Source: Blastocystis sp. Blastoise
Taxonomy: Eukaryota; Protista; Bigyra: Opalinata
NCBI GenBank assembly: GCA_039096225.1
Contig: JBBPEB010000020.1
Span: 310,001 to 374,000, forward strand
Length of the DNA stretch: 64,000 nt
Reading direction: 5' to 3'
Shown piece by piece: positions 472 through 61,800 of the stretch; position 1 is the first letter of the stretch; every line of letters starts with the position of its first letter. The notes below the pieces were generated by a model. That model searched no databases. It had not been told where the DNA came from and worked only from the letters and a program-made list of their open reading frames with translations. The translations under genes were made by a program, and so were the position numbers.

Positions 472-2309
472 TAAAAATATTACTTTATCATTTCATTAAC
501 TATTTATATATATAATTTTTATATATTTTTATATATATATTTCATTATTATTAATTATACAGTTTCCTTATATATATGCATATATATTATTTTATTTAGT
601 ATATTTTTACTAATTATGTGTTTGTATATATTCCATTACTAATGATAATAATTTACTAGTTTTTTGTTTTACACTAATAGTACATTATAATACACTATCA
701 GGTCAAAACTAATTTTTAAAGTGTTTTAATTGGTTGATTTTAGTTCAAGATTCGTTCCACCAATAGAAAGAGATTGACTTCAGCGACTTAGTCAAAAATC
801 GTGATTTTTGACAAAATTTTGACATTTTTTTTCAGTTGACTTTTTATTAGACTTTAAAAAGCATATTAGACATTTTGTATAATAAAATTGACATTAATTT
901 CTCTTTCTAGATGGTCACACAATATCCAAAACACTTTTCTTTATTTTAAAGTCACAATTCTCTTAAATATGGGGGTCAATATTTTAGAGTATTTATAGTT
1001 CTGTTTGGAGTCAAGACCCTCTAAGAGTCATTAATGTAATTAAAAGTGAATGAGCTGACCTCTATGACTTGAAAACAAAATTCAGCCAAAAAGTCAAAAA
1101 TTTATATTTTTTTTACACTGAAAAATTGAGCCGAGCCTATTTGTATCATGGACAGTCAGACCAGAATATTGAATTTTTAAAATATTTACGGGAATATTTT
1201 TCTTGTTCAAAACTGAGTCTATTTTTATTTTGCTCTATATTAGAGGACACAAAGGTTTTAAAAAGAATTTTTCAATTGATTTTATTATGACTTAAAAGTC
1301 TTCATCCAAAAAGTTTGTCAGAGGTAATAAAAAACAGTTTCTTTCTCAGAATCAAATAATAGTCTTTTAGAAAGTCACTTTTAGAGTTAATTATGTGAGA
1401 GACAACTGTTTTATGTTAAAATTAATAGTTTTTAAAGAAATATGTCAACAGATCAGAGAGTCCAAGAAAATGACTTATTTGTTAAAAGTTATCGTGATTG
1501 AGATACATTACTATTGTATTAATAAGGTTCTTTATGACTTGTTTTAGCCTCTAATTATAATAAGACACTCAAAAAAAATGAAAAGAACAAAAAGTGTATT
1601 TTTATGAAAAATTTTATTTCTTGACTAAAAAATTTGAATTAAAATATGAATACATTTTTATTTTTATTTTATTGCATGCAAGCAGACTCAGACACTGCTA
1701 TGCATATTCTCAATGTTTTTGATGCATGTATGTATTATCTAACTATTTACTGTTTTAATATTTTCTATTTTTTTATATAATTCTTTTAGGTTTTCTATTC
1801 TGGATTCCTGTTTGCTGCCAGAAAGTCTCTATGATTGATGTCAGTAATATTAGTCAAAAGGAATTGTTTATTCTATTTGTTTAACCAGGTATTTTATTAC
1901 ATTTTATTTTTTATTTTTTTAGGCTTTTTGATGAGTTTCAAACACAGTACAAACACACAGCAAGTTAACACATGGTTGGAGGTATATAAATATAGTATAT
2001 TTATTTTTTCCTTTGCATTAACTTTTTTTCACTTTTCATTTTTCCTATATAAAATATTAATTTGGTTCTTATTTTGTTTCATTTTACTATTTAAATATGG
2101 TTTCTACTTTTATATTTATAGAATGATGGTTTGGTCGTTGCCATTGTTGAATCTTTTGTTTCTCATGTCCTATCAGAACTTAATACCGAGTTTTGTTTTT
2201 GTATATATATATATATATATATATATATTTGATTATTTTTTGCTTTATAAATTTATATATATACATATATATCCTGTTTTTATTATGTTTTATATTTTTA
2301 TTTTTTTAT

Positions 2310-5100
<2,791 letters not shown>

Positions 5101-6744
5101 ACTCCCTCTCTTCACTTATCTATGTATGTATATACTATTATTATTATACATTATAATATATAGAACTTGAATATTTATAAGTTTATTATTAAATACAAAC
5201 GTTGATATAGGTACAGAACAAGTATATATGTATATATATATATTGTATTTAATTATGTGATATAATTATATATTTATAGTATTACAGAATCAATTATACT
5301 ATTAGTATTATATATAAACGGTATTCTAAAATCACAACCTATATGCTTCTATTCGCACTTATATCGTATATAAATATACATATATATATTATGATTAGTA
5401 TTCTACTTATTATTTACTTATTAGTTAGTATTAACATATTCTATCATATTCCATCCCTTCACAGTTTTTTTTTTCTTCTTTTCGGCAATTTTATTCGTCT
5501 CGTTATATCCCTCATATCCTCCTTTCGTTTCTCAATATATTACTCTCCCATACTCCTTATAGAACGTATACAAGAACTGAAGTAATTTACTTTTTTAAAT
5601 GTATATACATATATTATTTATAGCTATTATTATTATACTATTGTTGCTATTTAGTGTTATTATTAGTTATATATATAATTAATATGAATATTATCTAGAT
5701 TCTTCTAAATAGTATTTATTTATAATTCAAGACATACTTCTATATATATATGCTGGTCTTATCAGCAGGATAAAATAGAACAGAATAGTATATGTAAACT
5801 TTTAGATGATTCGCTTTTCCTATTAAGAATAATGATAATTCTTCCGTATATATATATTATGTAATACTATAACAACATATATATATTTAAATATTATTCA
5901 TAGTTTTATAATCATATATATATATATATAGGATAGAAAGAAGTTTAATACATATATGTTATCCATATTATAATGATATATTCCTTATATATATATAATC
6001 TGTTATCTTTTTTATCAATCTTTTATTGCCTTTTATTTCTTATATATTATTCTTTTTGTTTTGTATATATTTAGGAACGAAATTAATATAAAGAATTCTT
6101 TTCGAATAATAGAGAAATAGAGTTAAAATAATAGATTTATATTTTTATTATAATTACATTCTTTAATGTATTTGCGACAACTTATAAACTCTTCAAACCT
6201 TATCTATTTATTCATTCACTTATATTAATCATAATTCATTGAAATAAATTATATTATAAACAAAAGTTTGTAAATTGTGAGTTATGACTTTATGAATAGC
6301 TATACTAAATATATATTTTCATTTTCTAAGACCTTCATAGTATAAATCGAATATTATTATATAAATATAACTCACAAAAAAATAATAATTGCAATTATGG
6401 TTTGTTAAAAAACAGGTGTTTTGCTCTATTAAGTCCAGAAACATGTTCTAATTTAAATAATTAAGCTTAATAAAAGATAATATGTTTATAAAGCAATTTT
6501 ATATTCAAATACACGTTTTAGTAGAGAAACAGAGGAGAATTCTAGAATCCTAATAACCCCCCTGGAAACAAAAAATTTTATACAGACATTTTCTATGAAA
6601 AAAAAAGATTTTGTATAAGGGCTTGGTTGTGTTTTTTATAAATATCGGAACTTTCACATATTTATTTTTATTTTGGTTATTAACAACTATATATTATATA
6701 TTCTAAAATGTATATAATACTTTTCATATAGTTATTATTATATA

Positions 6745-7275
6745 GGTTTACTGATCTATCCAAATAGCTTCGAATAGGTCCCAATTGGTCTTCAGTTTTT
6801 TAAGGTATGCTTTTTTTATGGTTTTTTATCCTCTATAGCTAACTCATGAGTTGTGTGGTCTGAACGTGTTGAAACCTGGTAGTATTAAAGGTATATATTT
6901 TTAACATTCTCTTTGTTATTATTTTTTATTATCTTATATAGGTTCAAATGTCGTTGCAGGTGTTCCTGATACACGTCGTCATGGTTTAAAAGGTATATAT
7001 TATTATTATTATTTTTTTTTAAATTAATTAATTTTTATTTTTTATAGGTAATAGGTAGTTTCTGGTGTCCCTCTTGGTATAAACTGTTTGGATTTAAAAG
7101 GTATATTGTTATATTATATTTATTTTTATACATTCTCTTTTTATAGTTGTGGATTTACTTCATGGAGTAGCCTAGAAGTGTTTTCTTGAAGGTATTTATT
7201 TATTATTATTCTTATTTCTATCATTTTTTTATATAGTGACACAAAATGGTTCCCAATCTATTCAAAAATAATCAA
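6745..7275 (+). pseudogene. Run of ~50-nt exons with short introns, unidentified gene fragment (cargo)
   Basis: About six mini-exons bounded by AG/GT (e.g. LTHELCGLNVLKPGSIK, GSNVVAGVPDTRRHGLK). Stops appear when they are spliced in order. Confidence 0.5.
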
Positions 7276-10221
7276 AATATTTTATTTTTATTATTATTTT
7301 ATTGTTTTAATTATTATACTATTATTTATTTGTCTTTTGTTATTATATTGTTTATTATCATTCACACAACGATTCAATAAATTGAAAAAAGTGACGTTTC
7401 TAAAAGAATTCTGAACGAATGATAAGAAAGACCATATCCGAAAAAAATAACCTAATTTTTGGCTACTCTTCTCGCCTGGCTGAAAAAATACTTAAATTTT
7501 AGCAAGCAATAATTTGGATGTAATCGCCAAATTGTTTCATGGAAATGACCTGATAGTGATATACTAACATATACCATATTTAATTGCCATTCACAATTAA
7601 AATGATAATAATAGCATAATTAATATACTTATATGTTAATATGGCTATATATCACTTATACACAGATACAATTAGATATTCATGAAATTAATATATAAAA
7701 ATAATATATATATTCATTTATGGCGTTATAAATTATCCATATTATTAACGATATCACTATTGTTTTTCGAAAATGTGTGATAAAATAACAACATAATTTT
7801 ATTTCATTATGTTGGAAATAATTATTGTCAAAATAAAATATTTTCAAATATGCTTAACAAGCGAACCACGCCGCTAGAATGTTTACTCTCAATACTACGA
7901 AATAATTCTAATTCCTATTCAATATTTTCGTTTTATAATGAAAACAAGAATTTATCGTTTATAATTAATTAACTAATATCGATTTATACGAATTATTAAT
8001 ATGCTGCTAGCACGTATAGTCATTTCATAATAATCACGTTTATTTATAATTAATTCTTAAAATAATTTTCAAGCTTAGTAATAATAACTACAAAAAACAA
8101 ATTTTTGATAAGTCATGTTCACTCATTAATAAAGCGTTTATTATAATAATAACGTATTATCATAATTTAGACATATGTGCTACTCAGTTTACTCTATTTA
8201 AAATTATGAATAAGCACAATTGGCGCATGATTCCCAATATACCTAACTACTTTTTTATTTTAAATGCCATTAACATATTCAGAGGCATATAACACTGACT
8301 ACTGACATATTTAGAGCCAAAATAAATTTTTTGAGAAGTGAATCAGTTTGTAATTTTTACCCACTTTTTAAAAAAATTAGACACTGTCGAACTCCTGTTG
8401 TGTCATACAACGCATATTGATTATTTAGACCTTAAATACAAAAAAAGTCAAAAAATACAATGTCATGATTAGACGTATTTATTTTATATACTCATAGGTC
8501 AATACGCCTTTTAATTCCTTTTGAATTTTTTAGTTTTAAATATATATATAAAATATATATATAAATAAATAAAAAAATTAAAAAGAAATAAAACTTATTA
8601 TTATATATATAGACTATATTCAATAAATAAATTTATTATTTTTTGGCAAAAACCTATTTATTGTTGACTTTTTTATAATATTATATATTAGTTTATATAT
8701 ATGTCTATTAAAATTATTATTTTATTTTTAATTATGGGCGAAAGCGACAATTTTTCGGGTGAATCGCGATATCGCTTTTTGACGGTCTTTTATCATCGAC
8801 AAGTGTCGGTTATACGACGAGAATGCGGTATATGTCGAGTAATATAGGGAGGCGTGACAACGAGTATTAGCGGCATATATAAGTGGCGAATACTCGCAAT
8901 AATATAGGTATTCCCACATTTACTAGCTGAGTTGACCATACTACAAAAAAATATTTTTTTATTAAATAGATGTGTAACAAAAAGTAGTATTTAATTTAAA
9001 AACACATATATGATATATTCAAGTATATATCAAACAAATTAAAACAAAACAAGAAATAAAGACACACACGATTACAAACACATTTACTTTTTGGTTAACC
9101 ACCAAAGACATATTATATGAATATATCATATATATAATATATATAATATATCAATATACAAAAAATAAGTGATAATAATCACTTATACTGGTAAAAAAGT
9201 CATATATGATACTCTTATAAAGGATTTTTTAAAAAATATCTTCCCCATATATACTAGAGGCCCCTTTTAAGGATACTGCAAAAGTTTTTTTAAATAATTT
9301 TTCCATCCCGAGTGGACTCAACAGCTCAGGTTTGCTAGTATGGCTGCCAGAAAATTAAAAACACGGAAATTCGGCCTTCCCTTAGCTAAAAATAGAAATT
9401 AGAAGGAAAATGTTAAAAATGACTGACAACAATCAAATTAAAGTAAAGTCACTGAGAGTTTATATTATAAACAAATTGAGATTATAAGGTTAATCACAGA
9501 CATGTAAACAAGTGATAATTACAGTATAGTGCTTTTTAAAAAAATATTTCTCACCATTCTCGAACAAATGTTGCAAATAAAAGACCTAGTTTAAGATTTT
9601 GTTTTATATATTGATACAGGTAGTTATCAAATCAAAATCACGCTAATTTAAATATATAGTTTTAGTTCTGACTAGAGTTAATTGTGAAATGATGTATTGG
9701 TCTTATTAAAAACTACATTAATTATGTCATAGTAGATCATATATTTGTAATCAACAGCATCCAATAATAAAGAGTTTGAATTGTTGCAACATTACCAATT
9801 AATGCTGAGATTTCTTAAAAAAATATTTCTAAATGATTTCAATTCTATAAAATATCTTTATATAAAGCGTGTCTCAGATATATGTAAGAAAATATAAACA
9901 AAATTACTTTAAAAAATATTTTTAACAATTGAAAAATATAAAACCAAACATAAATTATTATTTAATAAAAAAAAATTATATTATATGAATAAAAATATAT
10001 GAAAACAATATAAAAATAGTATATATATATAGTATATTTTTATTTGTTGAGTTTGAATTCATGTATATAATGAAATATAAAACAATTTGAAAATAGTATA
10101 GTATTTTGATAATTGATATAAACTATTAGAAATCATAATTTATTATCTAGATAATATAATTCAATAAATATTTATAAATGGAGTGTTATATATTATTAAA
10201 AAAGTATATATATATATATAT

Positions 10222-10771: not shown

Positions 10772-11290
10772 TTCCAAGTTGACACTTGATGTTTTAAAAG
10801 TTCCAAGTTGACAATTGATGTTTTAAAAGTTCCAAGTTGACATTTGATGTTTTAAAAGTTCCAAGTTGACACTTGATGTTTTAAAAGTTCCAAGTTGACA
10901 ATTGATGTTTTAAAAGTTCCAAGTTGACATTTGATGTTTTAAAAGTTCCAAGTTGACACTTGATGTTTTAAAAGTTCCAAGTTGACATTTGATGTTTTAA
11001 AAGTTCCAAGTTGACATTTGTTATTTTAAAAGTTCCAAGTTGACACTTGATGTTTTAAAAGTTCCAAGTTGACACTTCATGTTTTAAAAGTTCCAAGTTG
11101 ACACTTGATGTTTTAAAAGTTCCAAGTTGACATTTGATGTTTTAAAAGTTCCAAGTTGACATTTGTTATTTTAAAAGTTCCAAGTTGACATTTGTTATTT
11201 TAAAAGTTCCAAGTTGACACTTGATGTTTTAAAAGTTCCAAGTTGACACTTGATGTTTTAAAAGTTCCAAGTTGACATTTGTTATTTTAT
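10772..11290 (+). repeat. Left-TIR tandem array, 18 x 29 bp
   Basis: Unit TTCCAAGTTGACA(C/T/A)TTG(A/T)T(G/A)TTTTAAAAG, head to tail, no spacers. Confidence 0.95.
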
Positions 11291-25074: not shown

Positions 25075-25830
25075 ATATTATTATCTTAAAAAGTTATTCT
25101 TTTAGTTTATAAAATATTTTTATATCTAGTATGTTTTTTATCGATTATTTGTTTATATTTTATTTTTTAGCCTTGATTTTTTCATAATAGTTTATTTAGT
25201 TTTATCTTGTGTTATTTAATATAATTTTGCTTTTACAGATAAACCAAAACTAAACAAAGGAAATAATTGTTTCTATCTGTTTGCTTTTGACTAGTTTAAT
25301 ACAAACGATTGACAAGATGTTTCCATATTCTGTGATATCTGAAAACTGATGATGTTGTTGTGTTAAAACTAATATAGTATTTCTGCGTTAATGATTTATT
25401 ACATCAAAACTAGTAATGGCTCTTTATGTATAATATAAAAAACTTTTAAATAATGAATATAATCAATTAGATTTTTCTCATCTCTCAACAATACATATTA
25501 TTATAAAAAATAAATCTCTATATAAAGGATACACGTAATTTAAATAAATATTAATGGGATTAGTACCATAAATATATCTTATAAAACTAAATGAATTATT
25601 AATTGTAATTCTTTTAAGCTTAACTGACAATATTTTATATAAATTCCTGTATAATACATGTATATATGGTTTTAGTATATTTATATTTTTTCTACATATA
25701 CTTGCTACAATTCAATGTTGTGGTACATACCAAATATATAATAAAACATGACTATTGAATGATTAGTAGTTTACCAAAGCATAATAATTAGCATAACTTC
25801 TTTAAATAGTCAAACACTACACATTTAAAG

Positions 25831-26141
25831 ACATCAAGTGTCAACTTGGAACTTTTAAAATAACAAATGTCAACTTGGAACTTTTAAAACATCAAATGTC
25901 AACTTGGAACTTTTAAAACATCAAGTGTCAACTTGGAACTTTTAAAACATCAAGTGTCAACTTGGAACTTTTAAAACATCAAATGTCAACTTGGAACTTT
26001 TAAAACATCAAGTGTCAACTTGGAACTTTTAAAACATCAAGTGTCAACTTGGAACTTTTAAAACATCAAATGTCAACTTGGAACTTTTAAAACATCAATT
26101 GTCAACTTGGAACTTTTAAAACATCAAGTGTCAACTTGGAA
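25831..26141 (-). repeat. Right-TIR tandem array, 11 x 29 bp
   Basis: Reverse complement of the 10772-11290 unit. Confidence 0.95.
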
Positions 26142-57589: not shown

Positions 57590-60500
57590 TAGATGAAGAA
57601 TGATAATAGAAGTTGATAAAAAAGTAGCAGCAGAAGTAAAATGAGAAAGAGAAAAAGTAGAAGTAGAAGGACAAGGAGATATAGAAGAACAAGGACAAGG
57701 ACAAGGACAAGGACAAGAATAAGATGAGGGAGAAGGAGAAGGACAAGAAGGACAAGAAGGACAAGAAGAATAAGAATAAGATGAGGGAGAAGGACAAGGA
57801 CAAGGACAAGGACAAGAAGAAGAAGAATGACAAGGACAAGGACAAAAAGAAAGACAAGAAGAAGGACAAGGACAAGGACAAGGACAAGGACAATGAAAAT
57901 GGCAAGAATAAGAATTAAAAGGATAAGGACAAGGACAAGGACAAAAAGAAGAAAGACAGGAGAAGAAGAAGGAGAAGAAGAAGAACAAGGAGAAGGAGAA
58001 ATATAATGATAAGAACATGAAAGAGAAAGATAAGCACGAGAAGAAGAAAAAGAAGAAAGAGAAGAAAAAAAGAATAAACCAAGAATAAGCATAATAAGAA
58101 AAACATCAGTAGAAGGTAGGAATAAGTAGAATGAGAATGATTAGAAGTAGAAGTATAAGGATAATATAAGAAAAAGCAGACGGAGAAGGGAAAATATGTG
58201 GATGTAGAAGATGAAAATGAGAATAAAAGTGGAAGAAGAAGAGAATAAAAAGATAATAGGAAGGAGAAGGATAATAAGAGAATAAGAATGGCAAAGTGAA
58301 GGAGGGAAAAAAGAAAGAGAAGAAGAAAAATTATAAGAAGAAGACAAGAAGGAAAAAGAGAATAGAAGGAGAGGAACAAAATATGAATAAGAAGGAGAAT
58401 GACAAGAAGGAGAAGGATAAGAAGGGGAAGAGGAAAATAATGACAAAGAGAAGGAGGAGAAGGAAGAAAGAACAAGAAAGAGACGAATGGAAAAAGGAAA
58501 GAGAAGAGAAGAATAGCAAAGAGAAAGAGAAGTAGAAGTAGAAGTAGAAGAGGGAGAAGAAGGAGAAGTAGAAGAGGGAGGAGAAGGAGAAGGAGAAGGA
58601 GAAGGAGAAGGAGAAGGAGAAGGAGAAGGAGAAGGAGAAGGAGAAGGAGAAGGAGAAGGAGAAGGAGAAGGAGAAGGAGAAGGAGAAGGAGAAGGAGAAG
58701 GAGAAGGAGAAGGAGAAGGAGAAGGAGAAGGAGAAGGAAAAAGAAAAAGAAAAGGAAAAGGAAAAGGAGAATAAGAAGGAGAAGGAGAAGGAGAATGACA
58801 AGAATAAGAAGGAGAAGGAGAATGAAAAGGAGAAGGAGAAGGAAAAGGAGAAGGAGAATGACAAGAATAATAAGGAAACGGAGAATGAGAAAGAAAAAAA
58901 GAAAGAGAAAGAGAAGGAGAAGGAGAAGGAGAAGGAGAAGGAGAAGGAGAAGGAGAAGGAAAAGGAAAAGGAAAAGGAAAAAGAAAAAGAAAAGGAAAAG
59001 GAGGATAAGTAGAAGGAGAATGACAAAGACAAGGAGAATGAAAAGGAGAAGAAGAAGAAGGAAAAGGATAATAAGAAGAAGAATAAGGAGAAGGAGAAGG
59101 CGAACAAGAGGAAGAAGTAGAAGTAGAAGTAGAAGTATAAGGACAAGAATAAGAATGACAAGGACAAGGACAAAGACAAGAAGAAGAAGAATGACAAGGA
59201 GAAGGACAAGAATAAGAATAAAAATAAGAAGGATAAGAAGAGAAGGATTAGGACAAGAATAAGAATGATAAGGACAAGGACAAGAAGAAGAATGACAAGG
59301 ACAAGGACAAAAAGAAAGACAAGGATAAGAAGAAGACGAAGGACAAGATGAAGGGCAAGAAGAAGAGCAAGAGGAAGAAGAAGAAAGAGAAGTAGAATGA
59401 CAATGACAATGACAATGACAATGGCAAGGACAAGGACAAGAAGAAGAAGAAGAAGTAAAATAAGAAGAATAAGAAGAATAATAATAAGAAGAAGAAGAAG
59501 AAGAAGTAGAAGGAGAAGGAGCAGGACAAGATAATGGACAAGAAAAAGAAGAAGAAGAAGAAAAAGAAGAAAAAGAAGAAAGAGAAGAAAATAAAAATAA
59601 ACCAAGAATAAACATAATAAGAAAAACATCAGTAGAAGATAAGAATAAGTAGAATGAGAATGATTAGAAGTAGAAGTACAAGGATAAGGATAATATAAGA
59701 AAAAGAAGACGGAGAAGGGATAATATGTGGGTATAGAAGAAGAAATATGAGAATAAAAGTGGAAAAAGAAGAGACTCAAAAGAGAATAGAAGGAGAGGAG
59801 CAACATATGAATAAGAAGGAGAATAGGAAAGAGAAAGAGAAGAAAGAGAAGAAGAAGGAGAAGGATAAGAAGATAAGAATGACAAAGAGAATGAGGAGAG
59901 GAAAGAGAAGAACGAGAAAAAATGAAGGAAAAAGAAAGAGAAGAATAAGGAAAAGTGAAATTATAAAGCGAAGAAGAAGCAGAAAAAGAAAGAAAATGAT
60001 AAGAAGAATGAGAAGAAGAAGAAGAAGAAGAAGAAGAAGAAGAAGACAGAGAAGAATATATGGAGCAAGAAGAAACATGAGAATAAAATGTGTAGCAAGA
60101 AGAGAATAAAAAGATGGAGAAGGAGAGGAGCAAAGTATAAATAAGAAGGATAATAGGAAAGATAAGAAGGATAAGAAGGATAAGAAGGATAAGAAGGATA
60201 AGAAGGACAAAGAGGAGGAGGAGAAGAAGAACAATTATAGGAAGAAGGATAAGAAGGAAAAAGAAAAGTAGGGGTAAAAGAGGAAAGAGAAAGAGAAGGA
60301 CAAGAAGGAAAAAAAGAGGAGAAGAAGAAAAATTATAAGAAGAAGGATAAGAAGGACAAAGAGGATAAGGAGAAGAAAGAGAATAAAGAGAAGAAAGAGA
60401 ATAAAGAGAAAGAAAAGAAACAGACGAAGGAGAAGGACAAGAAGAAGGATAAGAAGAAGGATAAGAAGAAGGATAAGAAGAAGGACAAGAAGAAAGACAA

Positions 60501-61800
60501 GAAGAAGAAGAAGAAGAAGAAGAAGGACAAGAAGAAGAGGAAGGAATGCCAAGAAGAAGAAGAGCAAGAACAAGAAGAACAAGAAGAACAAGAAGGATAA
60601 GAAAGAGAAGAAGGACAAGAGGAAGGATAAAGAAAAGTAAAAGTATAAATAGAAGGAGAATATAGAAAAGGAGATAGAGATGAAGACAAAAAAGTAGACG
60701 TAGAAGGAGAAAAATAAATAAATAAAAGTATAGTAGTAGAAACAGAAGTATAAATAGAAGTATAAATAGAAGTATAAGAATAGGAAAATGAGAATTATTA
60801 GAAGAAGAAAAATGAGAAGAAGAATGAGAAGAAGAATAAAAATAAGAATAAGAATAAGAAAAAGTGAAAAAGAAGAAGAAGAATGAGAAATTGAATATAG
60901 AAAAAAAGAAGAAGATGAAAGAGAAAGAGAAAGATAATAGCAAGAAGAAGTATAAGTACAAGAAGACTGAGAAGAATAAGAAGTAGTAGAAGCAAAAGCA
61001 CGAGTAGGAGTTGGAGTAAAAGCAGAACTACAAGTAGATATATAAGCAGAAATATAAGTAGAATAATAAGAAGTATTATCAGTAGTAGTGTAGCTGTAGA
61101 AATAGAAGAAAAAATAAAAGAGTAAGTAGTAGTAGAAGAAATATGAGTAGAAGTACAAGTAGAAATAGAAGAATGAAGGAAAGAAGGAAAAAAGGAAGAA
61201 GCTAAAGGAGAAGAATTGCAAGGAGAATAAGGAAAAAAGGAACAAAATGGAATGGAAATGATAACGAGAGAAAAAAGAAAAGAAGAAGAAGAAAAGAAAA
61301 AATAAGAATAAGAAGATGTAGAAGGATAATAAAAGAAGAAACAACAATAATAATGAGAACAAGAAGTAAATCTATAATGAGAGGAGAAGTGGAAAGGAAG
61401 TATAGTAGAGAAGAAGTATAATGAAATGTAAAATAAGATGTAAAGGTGAAAGAAGCATAAGAAGAAGTAAAGTAGAAGAAAAAGAAGAATCATGAAAGGA
61501 TAAGAAGAATGAAGAATAATGAAAAGGATAGGGATAAGAAGTATAATGAGAAGGACGAAGAAGTAATAGTAGAATTTGTGAAGAGGTAATAGTAAAGAAA
61601 AGAAAAGTTTATATCTATACATAAAAGAAGAAAAACTAGAGTAAGATGTACAGTAGAATTAAGAATGAAGAATTAACAATAAAGAATGAAGAATTAAGAT
61701 TAAGAATGAAGAATGAAGAATTAAGATTAAGAATTAACAATAAAGAATGAAGAATGAAGAATGAAGAATGAAGAATGAAGAATGAAGAATGAAGAATTAA
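57590..61800. repeat. Purine-rich low-complexity tract with internal duplication
   Basis: (GAA)n, (GAAGGA)n, (GGACAA)n, (GAAGAAT)n. Block ~58040-58440 recurs at ~59565-59890. Confidence 0.92.

Follow-up and report, generated by a model that had tools for sequence, protein, structure and literature searches.

A Pack-CACTA transposon of a tortoise Blastocystis carrying a decayed Ig-repeat gene fragment that lacks one intron exactly

Introduction

The locus described here raises the question of how the interior of a transposon came to be filled with pieces of spliced genes that all point in the same direction. It lies in a 64,000-nt stretch of DNA, hereafter the window, on contig C28 of the 33.3-Mb, 34-contig genome of Blastocystis sp. 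Blastoise from the tortoise gut. Gene capture by CACTA elements is familiar from plants; what sets the present case apart is that copies of one family also appear to lose whole introns cleanly, as if they had been rewritten from spliced RNA. The Tpn1 element of Ipomoea was reportedly described by Kawasaki and Nitasaka in 2004. Pack-CACTA transposons are known from Arabidopsis, soybean and Ipomoea, named cases being Pack-CACTA1 of Arabidopsis (PMC6379663) and Tgm-Express1 of soybean (PMC1947982; see also PMC8903248). In the literature searched, we found no paper joining Blastocystis and CACTA elements or describing Pack-CACTA in a protist, and the Blastocystis genome paper reports only the total TE content (PMC12129017). 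The known range of Pack-CACTA gene capture, so far that of plants, now includes a stramenopile protist.

A CACTA element without a transposase

The element is delimited by the following features:

690..692, no strand: left target site duplication (TSD), ATA, matching the right TSD
693..705, + strand: 5' terminal inverted repeat (TIR), 13 bp, CACTATCAGGTCA, starting with CACTA (motif search of the window)
7546..7558, - strand: 3' TIR, reverse complement of CACTATCAGGTCA (motif search of the window)
7559..7561, no strand: right TSD, ATA

As originally predicted, the element of about 6.9 kb (693-7558) has perfect TIRs, which are the only two matches to CACTATCAGGTCA and its reverse complement within the window, and ATA on both sides. 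A 3-nt TSD match has a chance of 0.033 per copy; 14 of the 16 sister copies with both ends inspected carry their own exact 3-bp TSD, and the 3-mers differ among copies. Relatives with similar ends, for which a search had been proposed, do exist: degenerate patterns retrieved 47 5' ends genome-wide (1 in the control) and 49 3' ends (5 in the control), corresponding to about 47 relatives of the window element whose cargo differs by subfamily. Both CACTA and CACTG variants of the TIR are present among these sister elements, which split into subfamilies with common ends and differing middles. The window element itself is a singleton, its ends being at most 78% like those of any other copy.

A profile search of the genome placed Transposase_21 (PF02992) above the cut-off in four open frames of 744-758 aa, with modest scores of 31-32 bits, these transposase copies being known here from coordinates and profile scores alone. 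Three of the four frames precede, by 6.5-20 kb and on the same strand, 3' ends that are 75-76% like that of the window element; the + strand of the window is therefore the sense strand of the element. Inside the element, there is neither a PF02992 match nor a long ORF, and a repeat scan of the window, whose output was mostly simple repeats, recognised no subterminal TnpA-binding repeats. The stretch 693-7558 is a real CACTA (En/Spm, CMC) transposon of the non-autonomous kind, which is presumably mobilised in trans by TnpD-type transposases from relatives in the same genome.

Several members of the family have been noted in passing. A 5' end whose TIR is followed by an AAAAC signature, as it is in the window element, lies about 110 kb away on the same contig (C28:427326) and is possibly the closest relative of the window element. 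Two members stand in direct tandem with about 650 bp between them (C15:650563-653968), and a 7.9-kb subfamily B copy is nested in a 25-kb element (C15:760025-785582). Paired ends 14-36 kb apart (C8:58383-83455, C15:1019301-1052225, C34:544136-580391 and others) suggest that much larger members exist. Moreover, the copy L029 (C29:586877-593729) is a recombinant with the TIRs and 3' end of subfamily B and a middle that is 95-100% identical to subfamily A.

Backbone and inherited cargo

Apart from the captured gene piece, the interior consists of the following segments:

706..2152, + strand: 5' backbone, 74-76% similar to subfamilies A, B and C; comprises the subterminal region and, at about 1681-2190, short leader exons that are spliced
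2254..2887, + strand: older cargo piece with 4 exons, 88-93% like about 13 D-type elements and 9 loci near contig ends
4940..5372, + strand: older cargo piece with 3 exons, 73-81% like subfamilies A and D
5381..5638, + strand: exon rich in pyrimidines together with parts of the adjoining introns, 74-77% similar to subfamily B
5640..5790, + strand: short exon-like segment, no match among the copies examined
5791..7545, + strand: 3' backbone with short spliced exons, 72-78% similar to every subfamily, among them copies that follow Transposase_21 frames

The interior had been read as about 5.5 kb of host-gene pieces. Exon/intron pieces, probably from several unrelated sources, are indeed present on the + strand; however, their extent was overstated, because 693-2152 and 5791-7558 are family backbone and match dozens of dispersed loci at 72-78%. 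The larger part of the mosaic was inherited from sister subfamilies, three of which (A, B and D) have been amplified together with their cargo. The Ig piece described below is present in one element only.

No conserved reading frame was seen when the 5' backbone (706-2152) was compared with subfamilies A, B and C. A coding role for the 3' exons was considered and ruled out, as 1-nt indels between subfamilies break any frame. The conservation of their splice sites, but not of their frames, between subfamilies suggests that the 3' exons belong to a spliced non-coding transcript. Scans for tRNAs and Rfam RNAs, starting at 600 or 693 and ending at 7270, returned none.

Concerning the origin of the older cargo, the 9 loci that match 2254-2887 lie within about 110 kb of contig ends, and a similarity search placed no element ends next to them. 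Known from coordinates alone, they are likely the host donor family of this piece. For the A/D piece (4940-5372), neither a host donor nor a Pfam match was found, spliced models being searched one exon at a time, and its database matches are gene models of sister elements only. Indeed, GenBank contains spliced gene models laid across sister elements: the hypothetical proteins KAK8810561.1, KAK8815247.1 and KAK8792035.1 are modelled over sister transposons, the last one belonging to a D-type copy and overlapping 2254-2887. Some 'hypothetical protein' models of the Blastoise genome are thus chimeras of transposon cargo.

The captured Ig-repeat piece and its donor

3121..4895, + strand: captured piece with 8 exons and 93% identity to a single donor locus, a surface-protein gene with He_PIG (putative Ig) domains

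This piece of about 1.8 kb matches one locus only, on the minus strand of another contig (C26:738808-740851, L011), so that the mapping to an intact donor that had been proposed succeeded here. The alignment is colinear over eight exons with 94 mismatches in 1362 positions. The exons of the donor are intact (467 codons without a stop) and encode He_PIG domains, and the coding sequence runs on beyond the captured exons on both sides. The donor gene is single-copy, the next paralogs reaching at most 49% aa identity, and no family ends were found in the 20 kb of sequence examined around it. Of the host loci behind the cargo, this donor was read and the second, that of 2254-2887, was inferred from coordinates only. 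Frameshifts at 3135, 4056, 4133 and 4185 and a stop at 4425 identify the piece at 3121-4895 as a decayed fragment of a host gene; one of its introns (4445-4466) has shrunk to 22 nt. The element thereby has the features of a Pack-TYPE transposon, with no transposase inside and an interior derived from a host gene that has an intact donor elsewhere.

The comparison with the donor also revises where the pieces are joined. Two joins had been placed inside exons. The one at about 3150 is a frameshift, since the donor exon runs on without a break and the copy has lost 1 bp at 3135/3136, and the one at about 4650 is no join at all, as WLSRIE-x-SSTTT is the donor's own sequence. Colinearity with a single locus, which had been named as the outcome that would speak for simple decay, holds for 3121-4895 and not for the cargo as a whole.

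The hexamer CCGCGG occurs six times in the element (window 3162-4615; 0.02 expected) and nine times in the donor locus (0.06 expected). It stems from the donor coding sequence (Pro/Thr-Ala-Gly codons) and is odd for a genome with 23% GC. About 80 Ig-repeat protein matches represent the He_PIG family in the genome. Many of them lie in uninterrupted open frames of 1000-8800 aa, in contrast to the donor gene with its many introns.

Exact absence of introns

3823..3956, + strand: 134-nt exonic run identical to the donor and spanning the lost intron (alignment)

The introns of the cargo had been described as retained. This is true for six of the seven internal introns of the Ig piece; however, a 77-nt donor intron is exactly absent at 3847/3848, with 0 nt of microhomology, a loss that the original prediction did not contain. 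Given the norm of 7% divergence, an identical run of 134 nt has a probability of about 0.0007. The intron next to the lost one has been kept and has diverged.

Similar losses are found among the sister elements. Six copies of subfamily A are 99.4-99.7% identical, and each of them lacks 4-7 whole introns. Among eight copies, exact GT-AG introns account for 178 of the 236 pairwise gaps of at least 30 nt. Microhomology at lost introns amounts to 0 nt in 13 of 19 cases, 1 nt in four and 2 nt in two. Adjacent introns have been lost together in 13 pairs, as compared to 7.3 expected (P=0.016), a generous estimate in which shared losses are counted repeatedly. Moreover, the same three introns are absent from three copies on three contigs (L014, L015 and L018), while three other copies retain them. 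The A copies also contain short allele tracts from other subfamilies; a link between these alleles and lost introns, with 10 of 15 within 150 columns, is not significant (permutation P=0.10).

The losses point to conversion of the elements by spliced RNA or cDNA. As an alternative, the capture could be real and the exact losses could be artefacts of assembly or polishing, caused by spliced reads in short-read polishing or by consensus errors in repeats. Such an origin would fit the length of the 134-nt tract, which is about that of one short read, and the description of the POLCA step only as 'short-read polishing' (PMC12129017). However, the methods name nanopore and Illumina DNA polishing (PMC12129017), and the donor, the best mapping target of its own mRNA, keeps the intron, so that spliced RNA or cDNA as the source of conversion is likelier than an artefact. 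Moreover, the three losses common to L014, L015 and L018 are absent from the three other copies, as descent predicts. We therefore consider an artefact unlikely and the intron losses probably real. A closer paralog that could have served as an intron-less donor was also sought, and the assembly contains none; an unassembled allele might have played this role.

Seams and mechanism of capture

2878..3120, + strand: left seam, a hybrid intron with an (ATT)n run of about 220 nt (alignment)
4896..5009, + strand: right seam, a hybrid intron with a (TA)n run; A/D-type homology begins at 4926-4958

The donor exons adjoining the captured ones are missing from the element, which confines both seams to introns or their edges; the donor introns flanking the captured exons are also ATT-rich. 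Between the same two flanking pieces, the D-type copies carry 1.45-1.55 kb of other sequence, as judged from coordinates and alignments only, and the Ig piece thus replaced that segment. Within simple repeats the switch points can be located only roughly, and the D-type copies (e.g., C16:1433800-1441500 and C4:453000-459000) are known from coordinates only. The alignment partner also changes at 2256, 5372/5381, 5638 and 5791, and these positions are again intronic, although alignment ends tend to fall in introns anyway and a few A/D ends are exonic. Introns account for about 35% of the donor span that was captured. The similarity of the 5' backbone to A and B stops inside an exon, at about 2152. 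The middle of subfamily B is colinear with another single locus (C25:593279-596918, 82-88%), known from its coordinates, where both alignment ends fall in ATT-rich introns, and the internal deletions of this subfamily also end in introns. On the sense strand of introns, ATTATT outnumbers AATAAT by 46:5 in the donor, 42:2 in A and 69:9 in B.

On balance, we favour, as probable rather than certain, the view that the window harbours a non-autonomous Pack-CACTA whose middle was swapped by DNA template switching between AT microsatellites in introns, and from which one intron was removed separately via spliced RNA or cDNA. The Pack-CACTA nature, the same-strand mosaic and capture at the DNA level by template switching had all been predicted and are supported; the joins offered in their favour were wrong, the true seams lying in introns at AT microsatellites. 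The element would keep the 5' and 3' ends of the family and one spliced transcription unit on the + strand, with the middle as a replaceable cassette. In a D-type ancestor, about 1.4-1.5 kb of the middle would have been exchanged for 1.8 kb of genomic DNA of the C26 Ig-repeat gene, as alignment and spacing indicate, most likely during gap or break repair with template switching between intronic AT microsatellites. Switching from intron to intron would keep exons whole. After capture, the Ig piece would have decayed, as its frameshifts and stop attest; separately, and apparently later, one intron was exactly removed, most likely through gene conversion in which spliced transcripts of the donor gene, or cDNA made from them, served as template. 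Microhomology-guided template switching is also the model for animal Pack-TIRs (PMC8277862). Since the intron repeats are strand-biased, with ATT on the sense strand, repeat-primed switching would favour sense-strand capture, although selection for spliceable cargo could yield the same orientation, for which about four pieces are the evidence. Exchange between intron microsatellites with such a strand bias offers a testable rule for cargo with intact exons on the sense strand.

Capture may also have occurred at the level of RNA, by reverse transcription of a chimeric or partly spliced pre-mRNA into the element. The sense orientation of the cargo, the fading of donor similarity a few nt past the outer exon edges (3121-3129 and 4893-4895) and the one exactly lost intron would all agree with exon-bounded cargo that had already shed an intron. 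However, six of seven introns have been kept, and the 134-nt donor-identical run around the lost intron suggests that the loss is later than the capture, which renders an RNA intermediate quite unlikely. Alternatively, two copies inserted in tandem could have flanked the Ig exons in the C26 gene and, after aberrant excision, have been left as one hybrid element (Catoni et al. 2019). This route has been shown for Arabidopsis Pack-CACTA1a (PMC6379663), and closely spaced direct tandem copies are known in the genome (C15:650563-653968). For the window element it is distinctly improbable, as the donor is intact, with neither element ends nor remnants in 20 kb of sequence, the two seams correspond to introns that D-type copies also have, which speaks for a replacement, and the route would call for two insertions plus two deletions, each with its end in a microsatellite. 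It is highly improbable that the whole element is a misassembly of unrelated loci joined at simple repeats: the seams do sit in (ATT)n and (TA)n runs and the copy is a singleton, but the assembly is based on nanopore reads, the TIRs are paired and accompanied by a TSD, the Ig piece is a separate sequence, set apart from the donor by five indels and by changes at 7% of exon sites, and run X1, whose short reads are of uncertain type (DNA or RNA), contains 0.47 of the words of 3110-4900, of which the donor alone explains 0.126, so that the derived copy is present in the short-read data. The poly-A run X2 contains 0.13 of these words, as the donor alone would give.

Relation to known systems

Like the Pack-CACTA elements of plants, the window element has CACTA ends, a 3-bp TSD, no transposase and conserved 5' and 3' parts around a replaced middle, and it carries pieces with introns that come from one host gene and probably from others and that could be spliced in as cassette exons. 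It differs from them in its stramenopile protist host, in seams that lie in intron microsatellites and in near-identical copies that differ by exactly removed introns, which the consulted passages of the plant papers do not report. [quoted passage not shown] However, microhomology in these animal elements has a median of 2 bp and the donors are mostly nearby (PMC8277862), whereas the Blastoise element shows long AT repeats at its seams and a donor on another contig.

The intron losses also resemble a second process. Intron loss mediated by reverse transcripts in yeast, fungi and nematodes is characterised by exact removal without microhomology, by loss of adjacent introns and by conversion tracts that are confined to exons. 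The Blastocystis elements share the exact removal, the runs of adjacent introns and the exon-confined tract. Unlike in the known cases, the Blastoise copies are less than 0.6% diverged, the substrate is non-coding transposon cargo and the window copy has apparently been templated in trans by the mRNA of the host donor. In a wider and more tentative view, to which we give somewhat less than even chances, the DNA transposons of the tortoise Blastocystis act as cassettes that shuffle exons from intron to intron and are, in addition, rewritten in trans by spliced RNA, be it their own, that of a sister or that of the host donor, at a rate comparable to point mutation. If this is true, RNA-templated repair has been caught in the act in a class II element, where several whole introns distinguish copies that are 99.5% identical. 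Should raw reads bear out the losses, the copies would form a dated series for measuring the rate and the template of intron loss, a long-standing question. The introns of human-associated Blastocystis lineages are much shorter.

Other features of the window

Two arrays of a 29-bp unit in opposite orientation (10772-11289 and 25824-26141) are probably the ends of another transposon. Finally, a 3.3-kb purine-rich repeat with AGA/GGA units (57650-60992) is probably a Glu/Lys-rich coding region.
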